A stretch of DNA of 64,000 bases from Takakia lepidozioides (GCA_030704615.1 CM060731.1:81344001-81408000), one strand, 5' to 3'. Numbered from the stretch's first letter, positions 12,604 through 49,451 are shown. Made by a program: numbers and translations. Notes: generated by a model from the letters alone, not told the origin.

Positions 12604-14351
12604 CTACTGTGACTGGACATCTTCGTTTTCCGACCTCCTCATATCGAACACTTGAGTTGTGCCTCGAGCTTTGAATCTTCTCTTGTTGGGGCAGTTTAAT
12701 GCTATGTGATCATCTTCTCCGCAATAAAAGCATAATTGTCGCGGCCCTTTGTCTTGAGGGCAGGGGGTCGGGACACATGAGGGGCTGCCCCTGTGGTGGG
12801 GGCAGCGGCAGCGATAGGTATGGGGGGCTGAGGCACCCTTGAGTGCCCAAGGCACTCAGGGAAGCGGAGGCGCTCACTAGGTGGAGCCCCGCACACCGGG
12901 TTGCGGTGGGGGTGGCTCCACAAGGGGTGGTGGTAGCTTAGTGGGACTTAGTGGGGGTGGCATAGGACTCACCATGGGGGCGGAGACCTCATGGTGGGAG
13001 TCGTGGGGAGTCTTGGGACTCATCACGGTCCATAGGGGCCGTGGTGAGCGGGCCAAGACTCACCGCGACTCACCACCGGGAATCGAGGTCTTCGTGGTGG
13101 TTCGCCATAAAATGGCATGGCTAGTTGTGAACCCCCGCGGACAGCTACAGAAGTATATAGGGAGTAGTAACCCCGAGAACGGTGCAAGCCCATTGGTGAC
13201 CAAAAACTAGTGAGTAAGCGAGCGAGCCGGAAAGCGACCAAAGAGTGGGGAGCTGTTCCGGACTGCCATCTACCAAAGGGAATTCTCCTAGTCCCAATTA
13301 GGTGGAGGGTTCTAGAGGGAAGCGAAAGGGGACCGTTATGTCCCGGTGAGCAGCCGAAGCTCCAAGTTGGCCCGGCGGCCAGGTTGGGAGTCAGGCGCGC
13401 GCATCAAAGCGAGTAACTATGACTTGAAGGGGAGTTTACCGAATTGAGGTGCGCGACAATAATCCATTCGAGCGCCGTCTTTGTTTTTCTTGTGGCGTCA
13501 ATGGCTTGAATCGGATAGCATCAATTTGCATAGGATCATTACCGGATGTCTGATGGATCTTGTGTTTGGTGCGGTAGTAGCAGCGGCATGGTGCATCGCC
13601 GACCATCCAGATCGCTTCTCTTGACGTCTTTCGAACAAACGATTATCGCATGCAATGACTTGGGTGATGAATTCACTCAGTGTACTCACGTTTGGCATTG
13701 TCAGCAACAAATCCTTTACATCCACTTTTAGGCCACATCGAAACTGACTAATGAGACTCTTCTCATTCCAATCGGGGTTGCACGCAAGTTGTCGAAATTC
13801 GGCAGCATAAACGGAAGCTGGACGTGCTCATTGTCGAAGATTTCGCATCTTTGTCTGTGCAACTCTCTCTCTATCATTGCAAACGTTGCAGTGAACTCGG
13901 ACATGAACGCTTCAAAATTGTATAGTAAATGCGAATTTTTCTCTAATAGCGGTGCAAACCAAGATAGGGTAGTGTCTGATAGAAGAGTGCCCACGAATCC
14001 CACTTGAATACCTTCATCAGGGTAGCGTTGTGGATGTAGTCGTAGGAACAATCGTACTTGTTGAACAAAACCGCGAAATCTTAATCTCGTCCCATCCTTT
14101 GGTTCCCTTGTAATTTGTTGAAGATTTGGAGGAACCGTTGCAGTATGATTTGTTGTAGTATAGACTCGTAAGGTTGAAGATCCATTGTTCGACTCCTTCA
14201 ACTCTGAAATTTGTTGTAGTAAATTGTTGAGAGCGTTGTCAAGATCTTAAAACTAATCAACTTGTAGTTGGGCAGTAGAGGCACGAAGTTCTTGCATCTG
14301 GAGCTGAAGACTCTGCAATGTGGAGACCATTTTCGCAAATGTGTCTTCCAT
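12604..14351 (-). pseudogene. gag: gag pseudogene of the Tcn1-like element, interrupted by a solo LTR
   Basis: FRGFVQQVRLFLRLHPQRYP...LSWFAPLLE retrotransposon gag; CFYCGEDDHIALNCP zinc knuckle. Confidence 0.85.
12737..13458 (+). mobile_element. Solo LTR of the Galadriel-like family seen at 39233-46180
   Basis: TGTCGC...GCGACA termini; 5-bp TSD ATAAT (12732-12736 and 13459-13463); near-identical to the LTRs at 39233 and 45455. Confidence 0.95.
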
Positions 14352-30340: not shown

Positions 30341-30863
30341 TTGCAAGGAACCTGGCAGGGTTGCGTTGCATGAATATGTAGGGGACGTGACTTCCGTGTG
30401 AGCGTGAGAGCGTACGCTCACGCGACAATGACGTGGCGGGAGCGCAGGCTCATACCAGCTGATGTGGCGTGAGCATGGGGTCACGCTGACGTGGCGTGAG
30501 CGTGAGGCTGACATGTCGTTATCCTGCTGACGTGACAGTCGTCTGAATGACGTGGCATTTGGACAACTTGCCAGATGCCATGTCATCAGAAACATATAAC
30601 ACCTACAGCCAAGGGGCCTACAGTCGTGACATTCATTCATCCAAAACACCAAAAATTAAAATGCAGGAACGATTTGTGAAAGCATTTGCATCCATTCCAT
30701 TATTTCGAACGACTACACACAAGAAAGAAACACACATTTGACGATATAATTGGAGGCTGTACTGGCACCAAATATACGAAGGGACATAAAGTTCAAGTTT
30801 CAATTATTGTGAAATCCAGTAATGGAAATTGCAGATGACCAAAGTGAGAAGATGCTATTGCTC

Positions 30864-32350
30864 CTATCCCTGTTGCATAAGTGTATTCACCTCGTTGAAA
30901 CTCATGGGTGCCTGGTGAATGAAGATGTCGCATCTAGGATCACAAACCATTCTATTCAAGAAGATAAAATACAGATTCTTGTAGGGTATAAATTTTCCTA
31001 TCTTTCCCAAACTTGTTGTAAGCATGCCAACAAAATTAGGACAAGTGCAGTTGGGGAAATTTGAAACTGTGAAGTCGTACCAATCGGTCATGCCATAGCG
31101 GATGTGGAGGTCATCATAGTTTAGATTCGTCCATACCCGGGATTTGTGAAAACTTCCGTAGTGCTTGTAACACGACCTTGAAGCATTCGAGCGGATTTCC
31201 ACCTTGCCGAAGTGTTCGACAGTCGGAAGGGAAACGACGACCAGCTTCCCATTTTGTTTTGTTGGCCATGCATCAGCGTTAGGTGGTGGCACTCGAGAAC
31301 TTGCTGAAGTAGAAGCACCTGCATGTATAGAGGGGGCTCGCTGAAGGGAGAAGCCTGCCTCCTCCAACATGACAATCTCTTGAGTTGGAGATGTGTCCCC
31401 ACCTTCACACGCCAAATGCTTGGTGGAGGAGGCTTCATGACCACCGATGGTCGCACGTCCCACGCACGCACCTACCACAGTCGTCAAGGGCAGAACCAGA
31501 ATTAGTGGTCTTAGCCTTGCTTGCCCGTAAGGCTGGAATTAACCAGTGAAGGTCGGAGCCGGAGTGCGGCTTGCCTCTGGATATGGAGGACTTGCACTTC
31601 TCACGATTGGTGGCTCTGATTGCCGTGCACTTCACTCGAGACCCAGCACTGGTGCATTCTATGTGCCAGACTTTGTCATGGCATATGGACTCAACCACAT
31701 TGGGGAGGACGTTCGACTCTTGCACCCCATTGCATTGACAGTGGGAGATGCATGGGTCTGGCTTTCTAAGAAGTTCTTCCGCACTGGACATTCCGGAAAC
31801 AAATCTCTGATGCAATGGAACACGGGAGAGTGGAGAAAGAGTGGAGACGTGTCCCGTCGGCCTATGCGAGTTTGCATCCAAACCAGGAGGGGTGTTCAAT
31901 TTCCGTTACAAGAGCCGATCCTCCCACCCTCCAGATGCGGAAACTCTGGGACACCAGATGAGCTCCCTCCGCACACATGCTGACAGCCTTGACTATCTTG
32001 TTGGGATCCCAATCTTCTTGTAGCTTGCAACATCAACTCAGACTTGTCGGGACCATTGCCACCAATGCCACCCGGCAAGAACTCCCGGTATCTCGTTTGT
32101 TGCTGTAGAGCTCCATTTTGATCAACTTCCCGTCGTTACCGTAAACCTCTCTTTCGAGGAAGACAGTGCCAATCTGGTACTCGAAACGTGTTGCTAGGAG
32201 ATGTTCCTCCTCAATTGCAAAAACATTGTCATCGGCATCTTCAAGAAATAGAACAGGTTTCTCGACAGAGTAAAAATCCACTTCAGAGGAACCCATGCTG
32301 GTGCACGAAAATTTTTGAGCCACTGGAAGCCTCAAAGTGCATAGTCCCAT
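30864..32350 (-). pseudogene. SWIM zinc-finger protein gene, frameshifted
   Basis: YDFTVSNFPNCTCPNF...IPYKNLYFIF (degenerate SWIM CxC...CxH) plus an upstream Cys-rich block WHIECTSAGSRVKC...KC...DDCGRCVRG; ORFs 32033-32350, 31435-31899 and 30864-31487. Confidence 0.65.
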
Positions 32351-32645
32351 GACTTGTGTGTGGATTATTGTTTACAAACGACAGTGGGGATTACAATTCT
32401 GAGCCTTCCGTTAGAGTTCGACACCGCTACTAACGAGGCCATCCTATCATCGTTTTCTATGTCCCAACCGGATATGAAAGGTGAGCTAAACCCAGATATT
32501 GTGAAAAGCTGATTTACGTTAAGAGTCTTCCAAAAACAGTTGTTAAGCAGTTATGGCCTATGTACCGACCCAAGTGAAAGATGGCGGAGACGAACGTATG
32601 GAATCCAATGTCATCCCAACTTGTGGGCACGTGGAACCCGACAAT

Positions 32646-34655
32646 CACTACTACGTTTGGGGGGGGGGGGGGTTTAGCGAGATGCCCCTAGCGACCTCCA
32701 ACCGCCGCGTTAGCGACGGAAATACTATACGGGGGCCTGGGGCGCGCCGGGGCATTTTGCGAAGTCGGGAAGTCGTAGAGACGTCGCAGCAGCGACGTCC
32801 ACTCCGGAACGTCGCTAATTAGCGTTGTCGGGGAATCGCAAACCCCGAGACCCCCCGGCGCGGCACCGGCGGCGACTTGCGACGTCCGGGGATCGCACAA
32901 TATATATTATATATATATAATAAAATTCTGCGACGTTTTTTCTGCGACGGTCGCTTCTGACGTCCGGGGTCGTAAATGCGACCCCCAGACGTCACAGTAG
33001 GGGGACATTTTGAATTAGGTGGGAAAATTTGAATTTAAATTTAAATTTGAAATTTGAATTTCAAAAAACTAGTTGACCATTGACTCGGCGTTGACCACTG
33101 ACTCCGGTTTGTCCAATGGCAGTTCATGCATTGTTCTACATATATTAGGCAATGCATATTTGAACCTAGGACTCCACATTATAACATTTCTAAGGACACT
33201 GCGTACTATCCAATAATATACAATACATCTATGTATCACAAAAGCAGTCCAAGTATTATATACATATCAAGAGTTAGCTCCTAGTGAATACTACTATCTC
33301 AATTTTATCATTGTGTTGCAGATATGCGTACTCTACAAGAGCTCGCACAGGTGGAACTTGCACGAGACTTGTCCCCAGAGTTCTTCAAGAACAAATATCT
33401 ATCAATGGCCTAAGTTTTGCAAAGCTGCATTGCCAACTTATTGTTGGACCAATGGCTATAGGTCTGAGGGCCAAGCCCATGCTCTACAATCTACTTCCAA
33501 AATCAATTTTCCGCGACGCCCCCAGGACGCTGGGGAATCGCAGCGCCGCAGCCCCAGCGACGCATTGCGACGGCCGGGCGCTCTTGCAATTGGCGGAGAA
33601 TCAAAAAAAAAAAAAAAAAAACGTTTTATTTATGTATTTATTTTTAATCCCGGCATTGCGATTCCCCGCCGTCGCAAGAGACGCCCGGGCCGTCGCAAAA
33701 AGCATCGCTGGCTGCGGCGCTGCGACGTCTCCTGGCAATTCCCCGGCGTCGCACCAATAACTTGCTCTACCGCCAGACAATTAGTTCCCCCAATGATCTT
33801 GTCAGCCAAGGAGAGGAAACGAAACTCTACCAAGAGTCCACTGCTCTTTCGACTTCATTTCTTGCGTTAACAGAGCGTGACTGAAGTTCTTAGAGCGATT
33901 GGACAAAATGAGGGAGCCCGGCACATTATTGATGGAACCCTAGCCCTAACTCTGGGTGACCTACTGCACAGCTGTTCTTAGAAAGGTCAACTGCAATCTG
34001 TTCCTCAGGTTCACCTTGGAAAACCATTCAACCTTGCACTAAAGATAGGCTGAGACAAAAGTGTGTGAAACCCTAACTACAACTATACTGGGCACAGTTG
34101 AACTCAGATATTCATGTGAAGCATACAGAAGCAAAAACCCAACAGAAGACGCTGGACCAGGTAATATATCTTCTAGAACGAAAGCTTAGTACATATTGCT
34201 AAAGGTTACTTAGGGAAACCTCATATATAATGATCTGCGACGACCTTCCAAGCATTCCTTTCTTAGATTAGTCCAGCCGATTTTAGGAGTGATTTAGGGA
34301 ATCAAGTTAGAAACTTCTGTGCAGAATTGAACACCATTGAGTATACAAATGATCTCACTTAGGTCAGGTCAAGTTCAGAAACCCTGCTCAGCTGGGAAGT
34401 GAAAATGATTTGATGACTGTTCTTTGGACTTGCCGCATAACAGTGCGTTGGCGGGGGAATGGGATCAGGCCTCTTTCCGGCGACGGCATGGCATCGCAAG
34501 ATGCCCCAACGTCTTCGAGCGCCAGCGTTACGACGCCCCGACGTCGCATGTCCCGAGCCGAGCACCTGTGCGACGCTGCTGCAATCGCAGGGGGGTCGGC
34601 GAATCCGGCGCGCTTGGGGTCCTGGCGTCGCTAACCCCCCCTAAACGTAGTAGTG
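32646..34655. mobile_element. Non-autonomous CACTA (EnSpm) element, about 2.0 kb
   Basis: Termini CACTACTACGTTT(G)n TTAGCGA and TCGCTAA(C)n TAAACGTAGTAGTG; 3-bp TSD AAT; many GCGACG subterminal repeats. Confidence 0.93.
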
Positions 34656-35099
34656 AATGCAATATTGAGTGCAGGGTTGTAGAAAATTCAGCGGAGAACC
34701 AATTGATAGTGCATGTTGTATCACATATGAAGATTTCGAACCGGGAAAAACCGGCAAAAACTAGTCTAATAACTCATCCATCCAAATCGAATCTATCACC
34801 AAGCAATAATACATAATGGCCATACCTATCTAGTTCAAGACGGCGGCCACTGCGAAAAGGACAAAATGCCTTTGCGAGTGGACACGTATGCCCGTGAAAC
34901 ACAAATAACGAGATCGAGGCCCTGGCTGGTACTATCGAAAAACGTCTCGCAGCCAGTAGTTCGTTGATTTTAAAGCTGGAGAGTAGTAGGAGACTGAGTT
35001 CCCAGCAAGAGCGTGGAAGGCGTAGAAGATAGTCTTCTTTTTTTCACTTCAGCGAGAGACAAGAATAAGGCGAGAGAGAGAATGAGAGGTCCAAGCTCA

Positions 35100-37110
35100 A
35101 TATGACGGTGAAGGAGATAACAGAGGAGAGCGTGGCCCTAGTAACAGAGCACATGGCGGAGGAGGACCAGCCGCGCGGAGAAGAAGCTGTGAACGAGAGG
35201 GAGGAAACAGCAGCAACAGAGGGCGACCCTGACAACATGGTCACAGAGGAGCCCGACACCCTTTGAGGAAGGAAGCGATGCCGAAGGGGAAAAGGCTACG
35301 CAGATGGGGATGGACGGCTTGCGATTGTGGCTCAAGCAGAGCATCTGGGAGTGCCCTCCCAAAGGACCGAAGGTGATTCTCTCCTTTCTCTTGATTGTGG
35401 CAGTGGAGAAGACATGAAAATTGCGTTCGTTGACCCACACAGTTTTTATGCCCTCTTTACTTCTGTTTTCTGTGTCAGCATTCTGTGTTAGCATTGTCGG
35501 ATCTGTATGAGGGCTCATAGAAGTGTAGACGACAGAGAGAAGAAATATGGTGCTCCTCAATTCAGACATGTCCTTTCGGGACCTTTCATTCTGCACATAG
35601 CGGTCAACATTTCTGAACGCAGAGACCGAAGGATGAGAGAAGGGCAATGCGAGCATCCCAAAAATTGCGTGTTCTCACACTATCACACCCTGCACTTCTC
35701 TCACGGTTATCAAGAGAGGTGAATGAAGGGAGAAAGAGAACCCCCTCAAAATTGAGTGCGTTGACGCACGCAATTTATGAGGGTTCTTTCAATGCCCTTC
35801 TCTCATCCTTTGGTCTCTGCTTTCCCTAATCTATGAAGAAAGGTCTGGGAAGTCTGAGCAGTGAGAGATGTTTTCAACTTCAAAAATTGAATGCGTTTAC
35901 GGAGCTCTTTTATGAGTGAAGAAATGGGTGCGTTGACGCACTCAGTTCTAGGCAGGAAAGGAGCGAGAACCCCGAAATATATATATATAATTTTATAATT
36001 TTATAATTTTTATTTTTCCGCTTGTGGCCCTCCAAAATTGAGTGCGTTGACGCACACAGTTTCAGAGGGCCACAAACGCAGCTGTGGTTCGTCCCCCTTG
36101 AGTCATGCTTCTGGTTTTGAAGGGTAGTTCATGTTTGCTGCTTGTCTGGACACGCTTACTTCCATTGGGCAAATCAAAACCTTTCACAATTGAGTGCGTT
36201 GACGCGCTCAATTTCAGAGGGTCTGGTACCTGATGTTTTGTTTGTCCTTCCATTTGAAGATAGCTTCCGGTTTTTTTTTGGGGGGGGGGGGGGGATTTCT
36301 CTTTTGGTGTCTGTATGGACATGCCTGTTGGCAGCCAAGAATGGTGGAATGGTGTTAACAGCTTATACCTGACGAAGGGGGACTGTTCGGGACAAATACT
36401 AATCCTCCACTCCGATAAAGGGTAGCATTCTTCTCTTGTCTGCTTCATTTCATTTTTCTGGTCACACATCCAGAATTGAGTGCGTCAACGCACTCAATTC
36501 TAACGGGGTGAAGTTGCACTGTTCTTTTGCCTTTTTGCATGCATTCGCTTATTTGTGCTTCGTGTTGTCTTCAGTGCAGGACCCGCCTTTTGAAGCCATC
36601 TGTCTCGTCAGGGTGCACCCTTCTTGGACTCTTGCTGCAGTGAAGGAGTTCAGGCTTTCATGGGAGAGGTTGTTTCATGAACAAATTACGTGGATTCGAA
36701 TGTCTGTTTGAGAAAGTCGAATGGAAAACCATGGAGGAGGGGCCAAGGAGAAGAGTCAAACTTTTATTCAAACTATTATTGAGACACATTCCCATCCGGG
36801 GGCGTGCATCGTCGACCTGACTCTTGGAACAGGTTTGACATCTCTCATTTGTCGGTCTTTTTTCCTTTAATACACAATTTGTAACATCTTAGTAACACAA
36901 TTGTGTCTTGCAGGAGCTTCGTACCATGCTTGCAAGGCAGCAGGTCGGCTGTGTTGTATGGAAATGGGAGGGGATGCAGCCATTTTTACTGAGCCTCCAA
37001 GAGTTGCAAGGGCCAATGCCTGCCGCCAAAGAGAAGAGAGAGTTGTAGTGCATGTCGATATCAATGAGGGAGATGACAAGGACCTCGTCAACGATTTCAC
37101 ATGTGAGTAA
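35100..37110 (+). pseudogene. Intron-containing N6-adenine/N4-cytosine (beta-class-like) DNA methyltransferase-like gene
   Basis: Exons 36748-36832 and 36914 onward, joined across an 81-bp GT-AG intron, give EKSQTFIQTIIETHSHPGACIVDLTLGTGASYHACKAAGRLCCME. This matches the motif X-I-II block xKPxxLxxxLIxxxSxPGDxVLDxFxGxGTTxxAxxxxGRxxxGxE. Upstream exons are only partly resolvable. Confidence 0.65.
35418..36500. repeat. Dispersed palindromic mini-repeats with core AATTGAGTGCGT-TG-ACGCACTCAATT
   Basis: Copies at about 35750, 35923, 36036, 36188 and 36473; degenerate copies at about 35418 and 35885; related copies at about 48444 and 48541. Confidence 0.85.
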
Positions 37111-39956
37111 GTTCGTTTGGTGTTCGTTTCCCAGTTATAGCATGTGCCCCCCCTTATGCCTTTCACATTGCTAATGCATACATGTAATTTGGGGTGGTGT
37201 AGGATATTGAAAGCTATCCTTTGCACGACACGTCTCTGTTCAGCTCAGCCTCATATGTTCAAGGGTACCACACAAATGCCTAACATTGGTTATGGCGTTC
37301 AAACAAGAAGACAAAGCATGTGTTGCCTAGTGGTTTCGTCAAATTTTTGGTGCACAATGTGAAAGACCTAGAACTCCTCCTCATGCACAACCGATAGCCA
37401 AATTCATCTTCTAATAGGTTGTTACAACTAAGGTATGCTTACAACTAATGACAAGCTTGAACAATTTCAGTGCTCTCTCAGGAGAGATGAGCAGATTGTA
37501 CCTCACTGGCAAGGCGACTAGGTCGCATTTCAGTCCAGTGCCAGTTTAGGGTGGTGATCTGGTGTGTTGCAGGAAGTATGGTGCTTGAAAGGCTCACAAT
37601 GTGTCGACACTGAAGATGAAAGCAAAAGTGGAGCGTGTTGCACAGTGGAATGTTGCAGTAACCAGTGGGAAAAAATAAAAAAATCAAAGATCTGTCTCAC
37701 ATCTGTTGTGTTGTCTTATTCTAGGTTGCTTTCATCAGTATACCTTTCCCCAAATGGTAGACATCATGGATTAAATCTTATCATGTGCTTCATGAGGGAT
37801 TTTCTCCAATTTGTGATGTTTGTACAAACGGCATTGATTGTTGTGCTTGGTTCAGATAAATGTTAGAATGACATCCTCATTCAACATTCATCCACTCTCA
37901 TACATCCACTTTCATCCATATTCGGAGCGTGCTGACTCTCCTTCATCCTCATTACGCCTCGTCGCCCACATATGGTTCCTTATGTGCCGAATGCGCAAGT
38001 CCGCGGCTATAGACACTCTTCTGCCTATTCGGTCCATGGTAATAGGTTCGTGTCTATGGAAATGACGTGGCATCAACCACGCTGGCAAGGTCTACTGACG
38101 TGGCGTAAAGCCCGTGAGCCAACGTGACAATAACTGCTGATGTGGCGTGAGCCTAGCTGCGCTCACGTGCTCACATGCTCACGCTCATACGCTTAGCGGG
38201 AAGCATCCCCCCTATGTGGGCATGTTGGTGGTACCGCGACCATGTTGGTGTGTGACAAATGCTCAAGGGGGTGGCACATGGGATGATGATTGACACCGCC
38301 ACTTGAGGAGGTTCTTAGTGGGAGAATGGTGGTGTGTCCACGATGGGCCTTGGATAGAGGTAGTGGGGCATGACAGTGGTTGGGTTGACAAGTGATCAAG
38401 GTCTAGCTAACGGGAGTTCAAGGGACACCCAATTGAGCCATGGATTGCGGAAGGCGAGTAGTAATGAGGGGCTACTTTTGCACCCGGCCTCTTGATCTAT
38501 TGTCTTCAGATACTGGGACTTGGGCGATTGATGACCAAGCGATGATCGTATTGGGATGGATACTTGTCAGCTATCCGGTGATTAGAGGGACCTAATCACT
38601 AGGCTAGGGGGCGATTGTGATATAGCTTTCTAGGATTGTGTGCTTAGATTGTGTGGTGGACAGCGATGTATGTTGTGGCACGGTGCTTAGGAGCACGATA
38701 GCTGTCATGGTTTTAGTCAATGCTCCATTTCATGGACTTGGCCAAAAGATATACGCCTTTGAAGCGGCCTCATTCAATGCCAAATTAGCTAGCACAGTGG
38801 GTGTCTCAGACCTGGATTTTGAGATGACCCTTGTTTTCTCCACATACTGGTCATCAGACCTTGTGTAGGACTCTTAAGCTCCCACAACATCTTTCCATGC
38901 TCCATTTCATGGACTTGGTCATAAGATATAGGCCCCATTTGGAAGGCCTGCTTCAATGTCCAATAGTTGGGATAGTGGGTGTACATAAAATTTGATATGA
39001 ACCTCTCTTTTTCTCCACATCTTTGTCTTGGACTTGTGTAGGCCTCCCTAAGGCTCCCATAACATCTTTTCATGCTCCATTTCATGGATTGGGTCAAAAG
39101 ATACGGGCCCCAGATGGAAGGCCTCATTCAGTGCGAAATAGTTGTTATAGTATATGTCTCAGACCTGAAACGTGACAAGACCATTTTATTTTTTTTTTCC
39201 CCATATGTGAGTTCTCAATCCTTGTGTAGGCTTGTCGCGCCCCCTTGCCTTGAGAGCAGGGGGGTCGGACACATGAGGGGCTGCCCCTGTGGTGGGGGCA
39301 GCGGCAGCGATAGGTATGGGGGGCTGAGCACCCTTGAGTGCCCAAGGCACTCAAGGAGGCGGAGGCGCTCACTAGGTGGAGCCCCGCACACCGGGTTGCG
39401 GTGGGGGTGGCTCCACAAGGGGTGGTGGTAGCTTAGCGGGACTTAGTGGGGGTGGCATAGGACTCACCATGGGGGCGGAGACCTCGTGGTGGGAGTCGTG
39501 GGGAGTCTTGGGACTCATCACGGTCCATAGGGGCCGTGGTGAGTGGGCCAAGACTCACCGCGACTCATCACCGGGAGTCGAGGGTTTTCGTGGTGGTTCG
39601 CCATAAAATGGCATGGCAGTTTGTGAAACCCCGCGAACAGCTACAGAAGTATATATGGGAGTAGTAACCCCGAGAACGGTGCAAGCCCGTTGGTGACCAA
39701 AAACTAGTGAGTAAGCGAGCGAGCCGGAAAGCGACCAAAGAGTGGGGAGCTGTTTCGGACTGCCATCTACCAAAGGAATTCCACTAGGCCCAAATAGGTG
39801 GAGGGTTAGTGGGGGAGCGAAGGGGGACCGTTATGTCCCGGTGAGCAGCCGAAGCTCCAAGTTTGGCCCGGCGGCCAGGTTGGGAGTCAGGCGCGCGCAT
39901 CAAAGCGAGTAACTATGACTTGAAGGGGAGTTTATCGAAGTGAGGTGCGCGACACT

Positions 39957-39968
39957 TGGTATCAGAGC
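39957..39968 (+). promoter_or_regulatory. Primer-binding site complementary to initiator tRNA-Met
   Basis: TGGTATCAGAGC starting 2 nt after the LTR-terminal CA. Confidence 0.93.
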
Positions 39969-40008
39969 TTAGAGTTCAGTACGCGATCGTCCTTGGGATT
40001 GGCCTCAT

Positions 40009-41697
40009 CATGGGGTCGGGCAAGCCAAAGCGAAAGCGGAACGGCCCAAAAGATGATGATCCTGGTGAGCCCGATGGGGGCGACGTGTCACCGAGGCGGC
40101 CGTTTGAGGGAGCGATGCACGTTTCCGAAAACGAGGCCGCTCAAGAGCGGGAGGAATCCGAGGAGTCGGAGCCCGAGGAATCCTTGAGAGCTCCGACCGA
40201 CCAACAGATGCCTCCCATGCCGGCAGCTTTTGGGAAGGGTTGTTGGCGCAGTTTGGCGGGACGCTGAAAGACGTGTTGAGGGGCTAATGCCACTTCCACT
40301 AAGGGCGAAGTTTAAGGTGAAGCCTAATGAACCAGGCACCTTCGAGGGCGTCCGAAATCGGAAGGCACTCAACACCTGGCTCTTAGAGCTAGAGCAGTAC
40401 TTCCGGGCGGCCAAGTTGAGTGACGAGGATCGGGTGGAAGTGGCTCCCACCTATTTGAGGGGCTATGCTCAACAATGGTGGCAGAAACGCCTTCATGACC
40501 GAGGTCCAAGCCCGGAAACCTTGAACTGGAGTGGGTTCAAGGAATTGATGAAGAGACAGTTTGTGCCCCTCAACGCGTCCTGGCTTGCCCGGGACAAGAT
40601 GAGGAATTTGAAGCAAACAGACGACATTCGGGGATATGTCCAGGCTTTCAATGTGCTTTTGCTCGAAGTCGCGGACATGGCAGAACCAGAAATGGTCTTC
40701 AACTTTGTGGGCGGACTGGCCCCATGGGCCAGGCGGAAGTTGGAGGAGAAGCCACCTAAGACTTTGAACGAGGCAATTGAGAGGGCTGAATGTTTCTCAG
40801 ATGTCCCTAGGGGTGAAAGACAAGGTCGTACGGAGCTGAACCACAAGAAGACCCGGCGGGAAGGTGACTCCTTCCGACCGGAAAAGAAGTGGGATAGGCC
40901 ACGCGGCGACAATGGCACGGAAATCGAAGGGAGGGCCTTCACACGTCAAGGCGGCACCCGGTGCTTCGAAAGGAAAAGCGGGTGGAGCGGCTTATGGCGG
41001 ACAGAAGGTGACCTTTGATGGAGTGTGTTTCAATTGCAGAGAGCCCGGGCACATGACCAAGAAGTGCACGAAACCCCGACAATTGAACATGACTCGGGCA
41101 ACCATGGAGCTGTCGGAAGATACCATCAGTTGCTTGGTGGAAGCGGTAGTCGCCAGGACTTGCAAGGTAGGCAAATATTCTTGTGAGTTGTATCAGGAAA
41201 CTAACGCATTGCGTAAAGGGAGTCACTTATTGTTCGTGGATGGGATAATATCTGGAACTAACGTGTCATTGTTGGTGGACACAGGAGCGTCGCACTCCTT
41301 CATGACACCGGCAACGGCACAAAAGTTGGGACTCCCGACAACTGACGTAGGGGCCTCTATTGAGGTGCGTTCTGCAAAAGGAGAACCGCAATTGGCGACG
41401 AGGTTGGCGTTCGATGTTCCTCTTCAACTGGGGAGTTGGGAGGGACGTGAGAACTTCACCGTCTGCGAGATCGATGGAATGGATCTCATTTTGGGGATGA
41501 CCTTTTTGAGCAAATCCGGAGCGGTCATAGATGGCCGCATGAGGGTAGTCACGCTGCCATGTTGGAATGGTGGCGAGGTCTTACGAGTTTCGGAAACGCC
41601 CAAACCCGTGGGAGGGCGAATAAACCTTCTGTCAGCAAGGAGTGGGCCGTGGAGGAGGCACACGAGCCCCAGTTTTTGCTCTACATTAGAGAAGTGA
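40009..41697 (+). CDS. gag: gag with zinc knuckle and protease (frameshifted in this sequence)
   Basis: [25 protein letters not shown] gag, [14 protein letters not shown] knuckle, LVDTGAS protease. Confidence 0.85.
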
Positions 41698-44550
41698 AGG
41701 GTGAAGGCGATGGAGAGCCGAGCCCAGATTGGATCAAAGGGATTTTGGAGAAATACCATGATGTGATGCCGGAGGATTTGCCAAGCGGCTTGCCACCGCG
41801 AAGAGGAGTTGACCACAAGATTGAGGTGATACCGGGATCGGAACCGCCTGCCAAGGCGCCCTACCGGTTGAGCCACAGAGAGTTGGTCGAGCTGAAGACT
41901 CAGCTCAAGGATCTAATGTCAAAGGGGTACATCCGGCCGAGTAAGTCACCTTACGGAGCCCCGGTGCTATTTGCAGACAAGAAGGATGGGACGCTGCGGA
42001 TGTGTGTCGATTACAGGGCTCTGAATAAGGTGACTATCAAAAACCGGTACCCTTTGCCAAGGATCGACAACCTTTTCGATCGGTTGGCAGGAGCGAAGTA
42101 TTTCAGCCGGATCGATCTACGCTCCGGCTATCATCAAATTCGAGTGGCGGAAGGAGATGAGGAAAAGACCGCGTGCAGGACGAGGTATGGTTCGTATGAG
42201 TTCTTGGTGATGCCTTTTGGGCTCACCAACGCACCCGCGACCTTTAGCACGCTGATGAACAGTCTTTTCCAGGAGTGGTTGGATGACTTTGTGATCGTGT
42301 ACATCGACGACATCTTGGTGTATTCGAAAACAAAGGAGGAGCACCTAGAGCACCTCAAAAGGGTGTTCCAGAAATTGCGAGAATGGAAGCTGTATGCCAA
42401 AGCTTTAAAGTGCGAATTCGGGGTCACAAAAGTGGAGTTCCTGGGGCATGTGATTACACAGGATGGGATCAAAATGGATGATAGAAAGGTGAGGGCGATC
42501 TTGGACTGGGAGCCTCCGACTTCGGTCCCGGGAGTGCGATCCTTCCTTGGACTCGCCTCCTATTATCGGAAGTATGTGAGAAATTTTGCCAAGATCGCGG
42601 GGCCGTTGTCAGACCTTCTGTGTAAATCTAAAGTCTGGGCATGGAACACATTTTGTGGCCAAGCTTTTGCTGAATTGAAGCAGCGGATGGCGGAAGCTCC
42701 AGTCTTGAAAATCCCGGAGTTTGATCGTCCGTTCGAGATACATACAGATGCGTCGGACTTCGCGATTGGGGGTGTACTGATGCAAGATGGACGTCCAGTG
42801 GCTTACGAAAGTAAGCAACTGAATGAAGTGGAGCGACGGTGGCCGACGCACGAGAAAGAGATGAAGGCGGTGGTGCACTGTCTTGAGCTTTGGCGCCACT
42901 ATGTTGGTTCCAACCCAGTAAAGGTGTTCACGGACAATGTCACGGTGAAGTATTTTGCCACGCAGCCCAAGTTGTCCCCAAAACAACTTAGGTGGCAAGA
43001 TACTTTGGCGGTGTTCGACGTGGATATCCAGTACAAACCGGGACGAGACAACGTGGTGGCCAATGCTTTAAGTAGAAAGCAGCAGATGTACAAAGGCGAG
43101 ACGGCGCTCCAAAGGAAGATCCGGAAGGCTTCCCGGAAGGATGAGCTGGCGAAGTCCGTGATGCAGGACTTGAGGATGGGGGTTAAATCGCAGTTTCACT
43201 TGCAAAATGGACTGCTCCGGTATAAGCAAAAGCGTCTCTACGTGCCGAAGGGAGGGATCAGAGATAGCCTCTTGAGAGAATGCCATGATAGCCCGCTTGC
43301 GGGCCACGGCGGAGCCAAGCGCACTGCGGCACTCTTGAAGAAAGAGTATTTCTGGCCCAAACTGAGGGAGGAGGCAGAGGAGTATGTCAAGACATGCACC
43401 ATATGCCAACAAAACCGGAGCGAGTACAAAAAGCAAGCGGGGCTGTTACAACCCTTGCCGATTCCAGAGGGGACTTGGGAAAATGGTTTTCATGACTGCT
43501 ATGCCGCTGTCAAAAGGATTCGATGCAATCATGGTGGTGGTGGATAGGTTCAGTAAAATGGGCCATTTCATCCCCACCAAGGAGACGGCAATGGCACAGG
43601 AAACAGGGCGACTTTACTTCGCCCACGTCTTAAAGCATCATGGAGTCCCGAAGGATATTGTCTCGGACCGCGATCCAAAGTTTACGAGTAAATTTTGGAG
43701 GGCACTTTGGAAGAAGATGGGGACGAGGCTGAAAATGAGCACCGCCTTCCGACCTACGACCGACGGCCAAACAGAAAGAGTGAATTCCGTAGTGAAGCAG
43801 ATCTTGCGGAATTACGTGTCGGCAGACCAAACAGACTGGGTGGAACACTTAGACGCGGCAGAGTTCTGTTATAATAACACAGAACACTCCGCAACGGGAG
43901 TTTCCCCTTTCGTATTGGTCTATGGAAAAGCACCTCTGGTGCCGACAAGTTGGGCCGAACAGGACGTTGAGAAACCGGCAGTAGCGGCAGTACTGGAAGA
44001 ACGCGAGCGTTTGTTGAAGCTCACAAAGTACAACATTGCCAAAGATAGGAAACGGTATGAAAGGCAGACGAATCGGAAGCGGAGGGAAGTGAAGTTTGAG
44101 GCAGGCACAGAGGTCTGGTTGAACATCAAGAATTTCCGACTACCTCCGGAAGTCAGTCCGAAGTTCGTACCTCCGTATGCGGGACCCTTTCGCATTCGGA
44201 AGGTTATGAATGAGGATGTGTATGAATTGGAGTTGCCGGCAAACAGCAAGGTGCACCCAGTATTCCATGTCTCCCTTTTGAAGCCTTACTTCAAAGATGA
44301 AGCGCGTCCGAATCGGCAACAAGTGTTGCGTCCGCCACCTATGCTGTTGGATCATGAAAATGAACCTCAGTACGAGGTGGAGGCAATACTTAAGTCGAGG
44401 AAGTTCAAGAACCGAGAAACGGAGTATCTCGTCAAATGGAAGGGCTATCATCAGGTGGAGGCATCTTGGGTGCGTGCCTCAGAAATGGGAAACGCATCCG
44501 AGGCGGTTGCAGCTTTCGAAGGGCGACCTCAAAAGCGGAAGAAGCGTTGA
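41559..44550 (+). CDS. pol: pol: RT, RNase H, integrase, chromodomain (one frameshift near 43480)
   Basis: [21 protein letters not shown]...[19 protein letters not shown], and chromodomain [26 protein letters not shown]. Confidence 0.92.
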
Positions 44551-46254
44551 TGGGGACATCAACCTTGGAGCATGGGGGAGGAAATGCATGCTTAGCCCGG
44601 CTTAGCTAGCTTAGGAATCCGATTGCAAAAACTTGTATTGTACAAAACGTGCTATAAATGAAATGGCTTCCAAATGTTGTGCGTCCTATTTTGTTTGGAA
44701 TGGTGATGCATGGTATGGTTGGCTAGTGTGTAGAATGCATGCTAGCTTATAAAAGTGGGAGAGGTAAATTGGGTTAATCGTGTGTTTGCGTAGTGCCGAA
44801 ATCGGGTGACCCCCATCCAAGGGGCAAGGAAATTGCGCCTTCTTTGGGAGTTCACGTGCTAGTGCGCACCTGGCGCGTGCGCGTACTATAACTGCGCTAC
44901 CGAGGGGGTTGCCTTGTAGTGCGGGCTAACACGGAAGCTACGTGCTTCTGTTCACGTACTATAATCGTGTAGCCTCGGGACGAAGTCGTAGTGCGGCTTC
45001 GGCGTGTTCCCGTACCTCAGGCCAGCATTCCAAGGCGGACCCAATTGTAATGATTGGGGCGCACGGTTGGTTCAAGGTTATCTTCCTAGTCAAAGAGGGT
45101 TCCAGGTGAACCCTTGCTCAAGGTGATGCCAAAAGCGGCATCATGAGCGGTCGCAAGCAATATTGTTGCAGTAAGGCGATTCGATCCTCGGGGAGGATCG
45201 TTCCTTGGCCTTGAAGTAGGCCAAGAAGAGTGCACTGGGAGGAGCTGGAGAGGCTCCACCCTTGGCCGGGACTTGGAGGAAGTCGGCCGAACTAGCTAGT
45301 GGAGAGTAGAGTCAAGTGTGGGGTTTGATTCTTTGCCATGGGACGCCATGGTACGGAAACAAACTCCTTGATGTGGGACGCCACAACTTGGATGTTCGTT
45401 TCTACAAAATGGACAAGTCGATGAGGACATCGACTCCTTGTTGGTAGGGGTGTGTGTCGCGCCCCCTTGCCTTGAGAGCAGGGGGGTCGGGACACATGAG
45501 GGGCTGCCCCTGTGGTGGGGGCAGCGGCAGCGATAGGTATGGGGGCTGAAGCACCCTTGAGTGCCCAAGGCACTCAAGAAGGCGGAGGCGCTCACTAGAT
45601 GGAGCCCCGCACACCGGGTTGCGGTGGGGGTGGCTCCACAAGGGGTGGTGGTAGCTTAGCGGGACTTAGTGGCGGTGACATAGGACTCACCATGGGGGCG
45701 GAGACCTCGTGGTGGGAGTCGTGGGGAGTCTTGGGACTCATCACGGTCCATAGGGGCCGTGGTGAGTGGGCCAAGACTCACCGCGACTCATCACCGGGAG
45801 TCGAGGGTTTTCGTGGTGGTTCGCCATAAAATGGCATGGCTGGTTGTGAAACCCCCGCGGACAGCTACAGAAGTATATATAGGGAGTAGTAACCCCGAGA
45901 ACGATGCAAGCCCGTTGGTGACCAAAAACTAGTGAGTAAGCGAGCGAGCCGGAAAGCGACCAAAGAGTGGGGAGCTGTTCCGGACTGCCATCTACCAAAG
46001 GGAATTCCACTAGGCCCAAATAGGTGGAGGGTTTAGTGGGGGAGCAAAGGGGGACCGTTATGTCCCGGTGAGCAGCCGAAGCTCCAAGTTGGCCCGGCGG
46101 CCAGGTTGGGAGTCAGGCGCGCGCATCAAAGCGAGTAACTATGACTTGAAGGGGAGTTTACCGAAGTGAGGTGCGCGACAAGGCCTCTCTAAGGCTTCCA
46201 TATCATATTTCTATGCTCCATTTCATGGACTTGGTCAAAAGATACAGGCCCTCC

Positions 46255-47054
46255 GGGTCACTCCCAGTATTTTCAAAACCACGCGAGAACAAATATAGGG
46301 TGTAGTTTATTTTTTTGAGATAAATTTTAGAAAAGCCTTACTTAGAAATAATGGTAGGACAATATCCGTTCACCCAGTTGTTTTTTTAAAATTGTCACAA
46401 AAAATCCAGAGTTTTACATAAAAAAATTAATGTAATAAAAGATTTTATCTACAGAATAATATATCCATCCTTATGAAGTTTCTCATATTTCATCCAACTC
46501 TAATCCATCAGGATGAAATCTTCTCAAAATTTTATTCATTCATCAGACTTATTTGATGAATAAGCCTGCTCTACCAAAATCTGGGGTCCTTCGATTATGA
46601 TGTTTTTGAATTGGTTCTCTAAAGGTAGATGTCACCTGAAGTTCAAATATGATTCCAGTGATACACAGTGGATTGATATTGAGACCATAATCTCAATAGT
46701 GACTATAACATTTGAACCACCTCAGAACTTGTACTCTTTAGATCCAAATGATATTGCGGCTTTGAATGAGTTCGTGGCTAATGAAAATTAAACTTTTCCT
46801 TGGGTCCAACATTTGACTTATGTATGGAATGTTGTTTGTGTGAATAGAAATTTTGAAATTATATATATATATATTTAAATAAAATCTAATTAATTTTTGC
46901 AAAAAACAATTTATAAAAAAATAGGGTATTATGAACCAAAGGGTTTTACAATATTACCTAAAGATAGGGTGGAAAAAAATAATTTAAAAAATATAGCCTA
47001 GTATAAATATACTTTTGTACGCACGTGATATGGAAAAAATACATATAGTGACCC
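46255..47054. mobile_element. 800-bp non-autonomous TIR element
   Basis: Imperfect TIRs of about 45 bp, GGGTCACT...CCACGCGAGAACAAA and TTTGTACGCACGTGA...AGTGACCC; possible 4-bp TSD CTCC/CCCC. It interrupts the 176-bp array and contains a short ORF remnant at 46597-46791. Confidence 0.65.
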
Positions 47055-49451
47055 CCCCGTGCCTTTGGAGAGCCTCATTCAATGCCAAATTAGCTTGCAT
47101 AGTCTCAAACCTAATCTTTGACACCCACGTTTTCTTTCACACACTTGTACTCCAACCTTGTGTAGGCCTCCCCAAGGCTCCCATGGCAGGTACCCATTCT
47201 CCATTTCATGGCCTTGGTCAAAAGATATATGCCAACTTCATAGGGTCTCTTAATTCCAATGCCACATTGGCTTCAGTATGGGGTGTCTCATATCTGAAAT
47301 GCGAAGTGGTTTCCCATTTTTGACACTTACTTCCACTCAAACCTTGTGTGTGCCTATGTAAGGTCTCCATTGCTCCTACTCTTTGCTCAAAATGGTGGCC
47401 TTGGTCAAAAGATACATTCCCCCTTTTGAAGACCATTTCCAAAGGCCAAAGTAGCTTCAATAGGGTCCGCCTCAAACTTGGATATTGCTATGACATCTTG
47501 TTTCTTTTTCTATATCTATACTCAGACCTTGTGTAGGCTTCTATTAGGCTTCTATAGCATATATCCATGGTCCATTTCACGGATTTGATCAAAACATATT
47601 GGACCCCCTTTGAGGGCCTCATCGAATGCTTCAATAGGAGGTGTCACTGACCTGAAATCTGATATGAAACTCTCTTTTTCTTTATAGGTTTGTTGGCAAT
47701 CCTTTGTGTAGGCCTCTTGAAGGCTCCCGTTATATGTATCTATGTTCCAGTTCATGGCATTAGTCAGAAGATGTAGGCAAACTTGTGGGGGGCCCATGTA
47801 ATGTCAAATTAGCTTCAATAGTGGGTGTCTCAGACCTAATTTTTTTTCTTTAGGCCTCCCATTCATGCACGTATCCATGCTCCATTTGATTGAATTCGTG
47901 ATAAGACAGAGGCCCCCTTTTGATGACAACTTCGAATTGTAACGTAGCTTCATTGAGGGGTGTGTCTGTATTGAACACTGATATTACCTATTTTTTTTGC
48001 ACGTACTTGTACATCTTTGGGCCTTTGATTGTAAAAATGTGATTTGGTTTTTACTTTTTAGGTATGGCTTCATCCACCAACACATCAACGACTACTACGA
48101 AAGCGACAAACTTTGTATGGACAAACATTGACACATAGCTTCCCAACGACGCTAGGTCGTGAGACTGTGAGCGTAGGCTCACGTTTGTCCACGTACAAAT
48201 CTGCGCTCACACCACGTCATCAAATGGTAAGAGAACCTATTCACGTGGATATGGACCTAATTACCGTAAAGTAGCATGGGACAACATGGACAACACAGAA
48301 AAAACATCGAATCCTCAATTCATATTCATATCGCTGATGGTTGTAACCACACATTGTGCAACAGATCACACCGTTGTGATCTATTATAAATCACATTGTG
48401 CAACATTGTTGCAATAGAGACGATATGAGAGGGTGCGGGGAAAAAATGCATGCGTTGACGCACACATTTTTTCCAGCAACAAACCCCTCTGTTTTTTTTG
48501 GGGGGGGGGGGAGGGGGGGGGGGGTTTGGTTTGTTGGGGGAAAAATGCGTGCATTGACGTACACCTTTTTTCCATCTAAACCATTATGTTTCTTTACAGA
48601 AAATTACCTCAACAATAGTTTTTGAATCAACATCAAATCAAACATCAAATCATCAAATCATATCAAAACATCAATTCATCAATTCATCAAATCAAAAATC
48701 ACATATGTTGTTCAAGCTCAACTTTTGCCCGCATGTGCTTGAATATGTCAGCAACACATGTACAGAGATTCAACTAGACCAAAAAAAAAAAAAAAAAAAA
48801 AACAAACAAATCAAAACATTTGCCTCCCCAACGACACACTCACTCCTCAACCAATTTTGAATTAAATCGAATTTTAATGAATTCTAAATACATAATTGGA
48901 TTTAGAATGACTATGATTGCGGGTTTTTGCAAGTATAACTTGGCCATGATCAGCCACATCTTGGCTAAAAACTTGAGAACTTCGTAGTGAATATCCTCGA
49001 GTTGCATTGTCACTCCTAAATCCAAAAGGAGAGGAAGGTTGAGAGTTCTCCTTACCCAAAGACCTTGCCAGAGCCTTGAGTCTCATACTGGCTATCACTA
49101 GAATTACCAAAATTGGGCCACATTGAGCCTCTTAGCACATCATTCACCTTGGATGTGAAGCCGATAGGGTGGCCCTTCTCTTCCTCTCAACCCATCCCAA
49201 GATCTCCGCTGCTTGTCTCTTCCAGAGGTAACAAGAATTTGTAGGCTGTGGGAAAGATGGCCAGACAATGCGTGATGGTTTTTTCAAGGCCATCATTCAG
49301 CGCTCCCAACGCCAAAACATCCACTTGCTCAGAAGATGCACCCAAGGAGCGAGCCCATTTAACGACAACAACAGCCTCAACATGTAGATGTCTAGGTGCT
49401 GGGGGAGGCGACTCTTCGGACCCATGACAACAACAAATTGTGGAGATAAGC

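Follow-up and report, generated by a model that had tools for sequence, protein, structure and literature searches.

The stretch of DNA analysed here (the window) comprises 64,000 nucleotides of Takakia lepidozioides (GCA_030704615.1 CM060731.1:81344001–81408000), and all coordinates refer to this whole stretch. Our analysis indicates that the segment from 30380 to 38213 is probably a dead, internally deleted cut-and-paste transposon that carries the relic of an intron-bearing amino-methyltransferase gene, a passenger of the accessory class described in algal transposons. The element would consist of 5.8 kb of its own DNA and a later 2.0-kb insertion of CACTA type. Two divergent sets of open reading frames (ORFs) lie within it, one on the minus strand from 32350 down to 30864 and the other on the plus strand from 35102 to ~37107, in agreement with an earlier first-pass annotation of this DNA.

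The plus-strand gene reads as a relic of a beta-class amino-methyltransferase and is distributed over the following pieces:

35102–35372, plus strand: exon 1, read as an ORF, with an acidic N-terminus and an in-frame TGA at 35264–35266 that is followed by GYADGDGRLAIVAQAEHLGVPS
36335–36421, plus strand: GDC exon, reading NSLYLTKGDCSGQILILHSDK; an N-terminal block typical of beta-class amino-methyltransferases, recognized by eye against phage enzymes
36575–36711, plus strand: candidate motif IV exon from a pattern match, with DPPF at 36580–36591 and a terminal stop at 36709–36711
36745–36832, plus strand: exon for motifs X and I, EKSQTF...PGACIVDLTLGTG, to which a 1-nucleotide shift near 36737–36745 leads from NGKPWRR
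36833–36910, plus strand: GT–AG intron of 78 nucleotides, in which read-through meets a stop at 36868–36870
36911–37107, plus strand: exon with the rest of motifs I–II (ASYHACKAAGRLCCMEMGGD...) and a C-terminal tail

All profile and sequence searches of this gene were made exon by exon, and the matches come from the exon that holds motifs X and I (the X–I exon). This exon matched Pfam N6_N4_Mtase (PF01555) with E=0.0054 and 17.2 bits over profile positions 164–200 of 221. In the PDB it gave five matches, all to beta-class enzymes (DpnA, M.RsrI and M.MboIIA; E 0.03–1.2). Its tblastn search retrieved 112 phage records (best E 8e-3), and nearly all of the 30 matches listed among these 112 fall under annotated DNA methylases. 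The PHROG entry 'DNA methyltransferase' was matched with E=0.0053, and in an Atlas search based on language-model features the clusters nearest to the exon were those of PF01555, with a score of 0.90. In NCBIfam a DNA-methyltransferase model was matched weakly (E=0.12) and a tRNA-methyltransferase model slightly more strongly (E=0.039). A profile built from four phage enzymes found only the X–I piece in the six frames of the window, with an E value of 5e-7 that flatters the match, since the four seeds had been picked by their similarity to this very piece. The call of a methyltransferase is convincing because these weak matches are unanimous, and the agreement of the Pfam, PDB, phage tblastn and Atlas matches upholds the X–I–II block of beta-class amino-methyltransferases that the first-pass annotation had named.

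The motif pattern of the gene extends on both sides of this exon. The peptide described earlier is readable, with NGKPWRR in one frame and a 1-nucleotide shift in a G run leading to AKEKSQTF...DLTLGTG. The proposed splicing also holds, as the 78-nucleotide GT–AG intron keeps the frame, removes the stop and joins the peptide to ASYHACKAAGR. Once spliced, the continuation conforms to the family pattern (..AC...GR....E..D) over a much longer stretch than does read-through into the intron. The C-terminal X–I–II block (..KP.., xxGxG, ..GR..E..) is present in the gene. For the catalytic motif IV, sought earlier as SPPY or DPPY, a candidate can now be placed at 36580–36591: the DPPF at this position is the only DPP[YFW] in the six frames of the 64 kb, and it lies on the plus strand ~170 nucleotides upstream of the X–I exon. 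It is preceded, ~200 nucleotides further upstream, by a GDC at 36378–36386 (one of seven GDC tripeptides) in an exon that reads ...LYLTKGDC...ILILHSDK. By our estimate, the order GDC, DPPF, X, I, II would arise by chance in roughly 1 in 1000 cases or fewer, which is an argument from pattern and not a profile match. DPPF is an adenine-type form of motif IV, at odds with the link to N4-methylcytosine (4mC) that had been drawn through SPPY, and the form of motif IV alone does not fix the specificity of methylation.

The remaining pieces of the gene were less informative. Exon 1 gave no Pfam, NCBIfam or PHROG match of note. The exon at 36911–37107 had no relatives in a search of 1.84 billion proteins, which returned only bacterial adhesin repeats as chance matches, and a word search with the DPPF piece found nothing, in a tool whose length window excludes full-length relatives of short pieces. 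A ParB reading of ...DGDGRLAIVAQAEHLGVP... was dropped, as it had no profile support; a ParB-like domain may have been lost from this copy. A second xxGSG block in the exon-1 frame (35369–35407, EGDSLLSLDCGSG) matched the motif-I block of phage enzymes with E values of 0.2–2 and was treated as chance, although it might also be an older, second methyltransferase remnant.

This copy of the gene is dead, and most of its catalytic core is missing. From motif IV to motif X there are only 56 codons, compared with ~135–240 in the four phage enzymes, so that ~80 or more codons are missing; a complete core, with motifs V–VIII and the target-recognition part, is not found between the two motifs. Further lesions are the TGA at 35264–35266 in exon 1, the stop at 36709–36711 that ends the DPPF exon, and the frameshift that follows it. 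The first-pass annotation had suggested that such a gene could act as a reservoir of writers of 4mC and N6-methyladenine (6mA). With its stops, its frameshifts and an IV–X spacing of 56 codons against at least 135, this copy can be neither writer nor reservoir, and the idea of a reservoir cannot rest on it.

The insertion and its boundaries are real, and the terminal inverted repeats are real as well, if old and weak. The outermost bases of the element are AGGGG at 30380 on the left and CCCCT at 38213 on the right, and its two ends are composed as follows:

30376–30379, no strand: left ATGT direct repeat, a putative 4-bp target-site duplication, identical to 38214–38217
30380–30600, plus strand: left terminal region, with the AGGGG terminus, a degenerate inverted repeat and three TGACGTGGC subterminal motifs
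37975–38213, plus strand: right terminal region, with two TGACGTGGC motifs, one TGATGTGGCGTGAGC and the terminus CCCCT
38214–38217, no strand: right ATGT direct repeat, the same 4 bp as the left copy

The GC skew, which is ~+0.2 on either flank, switches to ~0 within 30380–38213. There are five TGACGTGGC sites in the 64-kb window, compared with 0.32 expected by chance, and all of them lie within 180 nucleotides of the element ends; motifs of this type, packed as they are in the ends, may be former transposase-binding sites. Alignment of the two ends in inverted orientation gave a local score of 30, whereas 500 shuffles scored 16.8 ± 2.3, and 27 at most, and the degenerate terminal similarity reaches ~190 nucleotides. 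The skew switch, the clustering of TGACGTGGC, the inverted AGGGG/CCCCT and the ATGT flanks together bear out an insertion at 30380–38213 with the boundaries first proposed for it. Both the inverted repeats of that proposal and the repeat that it read as a 4-bp target-site duplication are present, although the former are gapped and weak and a 4-bp flanking repeat, taken alone, is a 1/256 event. An alternative, imperfect 9-bp register, TATGTAGGG / TATGTGGGC (30375–30383 versus 38213–38221), matches at 7/9 positions and predicts an empty site identical to that predicted by the 4-bp repeat. The perfect 4 bp together with the inverted AGGGG/CCCCT make the simpler reading.

Opposite the methyltransferase relic, the minus-strand ORFs run from 32350 to 30864 across two frameshifts and amount to ~495 codons in all:

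32033–32350, minus strand: 105-residue ORF, the 5' end of the minus-strand relic, with a frameshift into the next piece
31435–31899, minus strand: 154-residue Cys/His-rich ORF, a possible remnant of a zinc-finger DNA-binding domain
30864–31487, minus strand: 207-residue ORF with a SWIM-like relic (CxC, as CTC, at 31041–31049), presumed to be a C-terminal transposase remnant

The ~495 codons are too short for a transposase core. We infer that the catalytic core of a transposase was lost by internal deletion, which would explain why no DDE domain had been recognized earlier, and the Cys/His-rich ORFs with the SWIM-like CxC may be what remains of that transposase. The 207-residue ORF had been described as a SWIM-finger ORF. 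Of the SWIM pattern (CxCxnCxH) it retains the CxC; 19 residues on, YKN stands where CxH is expected, although the context looks SWIM-like by eye. The call of a SWIM finger is not upheld. Word searches with this ORF and with the Cys-rich ORF found no relatives, within a length window that excludes full-length ones, and an Atlas search with the SWIM-like ORF returned noise. Single-sequence AlphaFold models of the 207- and 154-residue ORFs were unusable, with confidence values (pLDDT) of 32 and 37, respectively.

An array of palindromes lies in the intron that separates exon 1 from the DPPF exon:

35419–36499, no strand: seven-copy array of a 26-nucleotide palindrome (12-nucleotide arms and a 2-nucleotide centre in either orientation), with several copies extending to ~40 nucleotides

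All seven palindromes fall within this intron. At ≤3 mismatches the palindrome consensus is found at 5 sites, compared with 0 expected, and a scan of viral contigs with the palindrome pattern gave 0 matches. A relic of a related element lies at 48137–48570. It combines a terminal-like GTGAGCGTAGGCTCACG motif at 48159–48183 with two variant palindromes (48444–48469 and 48543–48568) that have the same TGCGTTGACGCA core, and its tract of T and G runs resembles the tract at 36266–36296. A partner terminus for this relic was not found up to 57 kb. The relic is the only hint in the window that the termini and the palindromes belong together in one family.

Two further components lie within the boundaries, one of them nested between the divergent genes and the other on the right-terminus side of the passenger gene:

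32646–34655, no strand: nested 2010-bp non-autonomous element of CACTA type, CACTACTACG.../...CGTAGTAGTG, with AAT/AAT flanks
37258–37675, plus strand: fragment of a gene for ribosomal protein eL32 (RPL32), with two exon relics (37258–37394 and ~37571–37675) and an intron-like gap between them

The nested element has an inverted-repeat pair of 25 nucleotides (92%) with termini CACTACTACGTTTGGGG..., and its CACTA termini and 3-bp duplication (AAT) are those of CACTA/EnSpm elements. Inside it, at 33538–33725, an A run is flanked by an inverted repeat. As for the eL32 fragment, the piece at 37293–37394 matched Pfam Ribosomal_L32e (PF01655) with E=8.6e-12 and 45.7 bits, above the gathering score of 25, and corresponds to residues 59–91 of eL32 in the PDB (E=1.7e-12). 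The second piece, at ~37592–37666, corresponds to residues 98–122 (E=0.004), and plant chains are apparently among the best matches. The fragment carries a frameshift near 37296 and is located downstream of the methyltransferase relic, within the right subterminal motifs. An intron-like gap separates its exon relics, and it looks like a capture of genomic host DNA.

The first-pass annotation had left the element unclassified, with the implication that it was novel; the same design has in fact been published for algal transposons (PMC12477816; 10.1101/2025.02.11.637652). In the brown alga Ectocarpus, the 21.5-kb element Sola1-1_Ec32 carries a passenger gene opposite its transposase, which encodes a 1104-residue protein with a ParB-like part and a methyltransferase predicted to produce N4-methylcytosine or N6-methyladenine (PMC12477816). 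The Takakia element resembles it in having a bacterial-type methyltransferase gene as a passenger opposite a presumed transposase, and its 4-bp duplication fits Sola. By comparison, its own DNA amounts to 5.8 kb, neither a ParB domain nor a transposase core is detectable, its methyltransferase is truncated, and it resides in a land plant. In red algae, as described in a study of Bostrychia, elements of the Plavaka, Mutator and Zisupton types carry a PF01555 methylase and a ParB-like protein as accessory genes (PAG2 and PAG3); tandem inverted-repeat arrays adjoin the accessory gene and were proposed to be binding sites of the protein itself, and Petroll et al. 2025 proposed that the transposon is bound and modified by the accessory protein it encodes (10.1101/2025.02.11.637652). 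The likeness lies in a PF01555-type gene within a DNA transposon, with inverted repeats beside or in the gene. The red-algal genes are distinct in that the methylase is fused to SET and the ParB-like protein to a 2-oxoglutarate (2OG) oxygenase, in two genes, and the red-algal elements are giant (17–19 kb) and of EnSpm type, whereas the Takakia copy has one gene with palindromes inside its intron. Of the marks of the algal accessory genes, location in a transposon, orientation opposite the transposase and adjoining arrays of the element's own inverted repeats are found in the Takakia copy, where the opposite gene is a presumed transposase, and a ParB-like domain is not.

Comparison with bacterial and phage beta-class enzymes (M.RsrI, DpnA and M.MboIIA) reveals a shared set of motifs, GDC, DPP[YF], X (..KP/KS..), I (xxGxG) and II (..GR..E..D). 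The Takakia gene differs from them in its introns, in a IV–X distance of 56 codons versus at least 135, in LTLGTG in place of PFxGSG and in being broken. Bacterial-type amino-methyltransferases also occur elsewhere in eukaryotic genomes, as MpDN4MT1a/b of Marchantia (10.1101/2021.02.12.428880) and N4CMT of bdelloids (PMC8885841), which belong to the host, are intact and have demonstrated 4mC activity. The Takakia gene, by comparison, is broken, and its DPPF differs from the motif IV form that had been tied to N4C enzymes. With Pack-MULEs and other gene-capturing plant transposons, the element shares a captured fragment, that of eL32 with its intron, which separates the passenger gene from the right terminus; unlike in Pack-MULEs, the duplication is of 4 bp and not 8–11 bp and a MULE transposase is undetectable. 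We found no literature on land-plant transposons with a ParB-like or amino-methyltransferase passenger.

Several observations weigh against a transposon with a methyltransferase passenger. On the side of the gene, all methyltransferase matches lie below curated thresholds and derive from one exon of ~30–37 residues; the PF01555 match of 17.2 bits, confined to this one exon, compares with a gathering score of 26.7. The X–I exon trimmed of its surroundings gave no match on its own, and part of its score is due to intron read-through. Neither the GDC exon nor the DPPF exon is matched by a profile on its own, no GT–AG pair links the two in frame, and a ParB domain was undetected on any plus-strand piece with Pfam, NCBIfam or PHROG. 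On the side of the transposase, no minus-strand piece had a Pfam match at E≤10, the MULE (PF10551) and SWIM (PF04434) models included, and no profile detected a transposase domain in any frame. As for the ends, the inverted repeats are gapped and ~65–80% alike, the similarity of the ends in direct orientation (score 36) exceeds that in inverted orientation (30), the terminus-anchored alignment reached a score equal to the highest among 500 shuffles, and the subterminal TGACGTGGC(GTGAGC) motifs of the left end (30429–30556) share their orientation with those of the right end (38063–38156) and are not mirrored. A second copy of the element was not found within the 64-kb window, the joint travel of both genes with these ends is seen in one copy, and a scan of metagenome contigs with the palindrome returned one GC-rich bacterial contig that had only a 22-mer in common, by chance.

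Some of these points would follow if there were no single element at all and unrelated relics stood side by side between termini and a 4-bp repeat that arose by chance. An end-anchored score that the best shuffle equals, the excess of direct over inverted similarity and a single-copy repeat of 1/256 are compatible with such a juxtaposition. Nevertheless, it would leave as coincidences the switch of composition at both proposed ends, the placement of 5/5 TGACGTGGC sites of the 64 kb at these two ends, the inversion of the five terminal bases and the presence of the same G-rich decayed repeat on both sides, and we regard it as highly improbable. The methyltransferase-like exons might instead be a host or foreign fragment caught by this copy alone in the manner of a Pack-type capture, and not a passenger of the family. 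The same element did catch an eL32 fragment with its intron, the methyltransferase relic is truncated, with a IV–X spacing of 56 codons, and neither the exon at 36911–37107 nor the DPPF piece has relatives. Against this stand the element's own palindromes, which fill the intron of the gene, the relic at 48.1–48.6 kb, which again pairs a terminal-like motif with variant palindromes, and the published algal elements, which show the same design of gene plus repeats. Such a capture thus appears improbable, and a passenger that belonged to the family is the reading we follow below.

The superfamily of the element is more evenly contested. Sola elements are reportedly marked by 4-bp target-site duplications, whereas those of Mutator are 8–11 bp long. 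The ATGT/ATGT repeat conforms to the former length, as seen in one copy in which the 9-bp register also matches at 7/9, and the adjoining 9-mers at 30371–30379 and 38214–38222 share 0 positions. No domain of the DDD transposase of Sola was found in any frame, which is weak evidence because Pfam was reported to be without a Sola model (PMC5751038). The 4-bp repeat speaks for Sola, the SWIM-like relic and the captured gene fragment for Mutator. A duplication of 4 bp is putative in this copy, because the 7/9 register predicts the same empty site. In our estimate the chance that the element is of Mutator type, and not of Sola type, falls somewhat short of even. A Mutator affiliation would account for the SWIM-like CxC relic, whose context is, by eye, typical of Mutator-like transposases, for the degenerate terminal similarity to ~190 nucleotides, for the capture of a host gene fragment as in Pack-MULEs and for the imperfect 9-bp register. 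It is less easily reconciled with a flanking repeat that is perfect over 4 bp and matches at only 2/4 further positions beyond them, 4 bp being the hallmark of Sola and not within the 8–11 bp of Mutator, with the absence of any MULE or SWIM match in Pfam, and with the fact that the brown-algal element with the same type of passenger gene is a Sola1 (PMC12477816).

Taken as a transposon with a family passenger, the element would have inserted into an older, decayed repeat, within its PHD-finger-like coding relic, where it left ATGT at either end. The plus-strand passenger would belong to the 'ParB-like / amino-methyltransferase' class of algal accessory genes and have a large first intron with seven copies of the element's own palindrome. 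By analogy with the published proposal, the protein of intact members probably recognizes the palindromes of the family and marks or shields its own element. A fragment of the genomic eL32 gene was picked up from the host, and with the passenger broken and most of its catalytic core missing nothing in this copy can work. A more far-reaching version holds that in intact land-plant members the accessory protein binds its own palindromes and either writes 6mA or 4mC or, as a pseudo-enzyme, shields the element from silencing, and that such elements could be the source of domesticated host amino-methyltransferases, e.g., Marchantia DN4MT1; we consider this rather unlikely.

A DNA-binding and DNA-modifying passenger together with its likely binding sites suggests a strategy of self-recognition or anti-silencing such as has been proposed for algae, and copies in land plants would bring this question into organisms with good genetics, e.g., bryophytes. 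In this regard, the locus adds little alone, because it is dead, truncated and single. Its contributions are the position of motif IV, which is DPPF and of adenine type, a 4-bp flanking repeat that bears on the question of Sola or Mutator, and proof that the family captured a host gene fragment (eL32).

The surroundings of the element consist of other repeats. The flanking repeat, from ~20 kb to 30.4 kb and at 38.2–38.7 kb, has a plus strand very rich in G. In the right flank, at 38215–38340, a Cys/His pattern like that of a PHD finger is seen by eye, with two stops in its frame; as it starts at the junction, the element appears to have interrupted a decayed coding repeat. Further downstream, a fairly intact Ty3/gypsy chromovirus at 39233–46180 contains gag, protease, reverse transcriptase, RNase H, integrase and a chromodomain. 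Its long terminal repeats (LTRs) are 728 bp in length and 97.4% identical, and 12736–13458 holds a related LTR (94.9%), either solo or a partner. Tandem repeats of ~177 bp flank the chromovirus on both sides (38717–39151 and 46181–47920), a layout that would fit its insertion within a satellite-like array.

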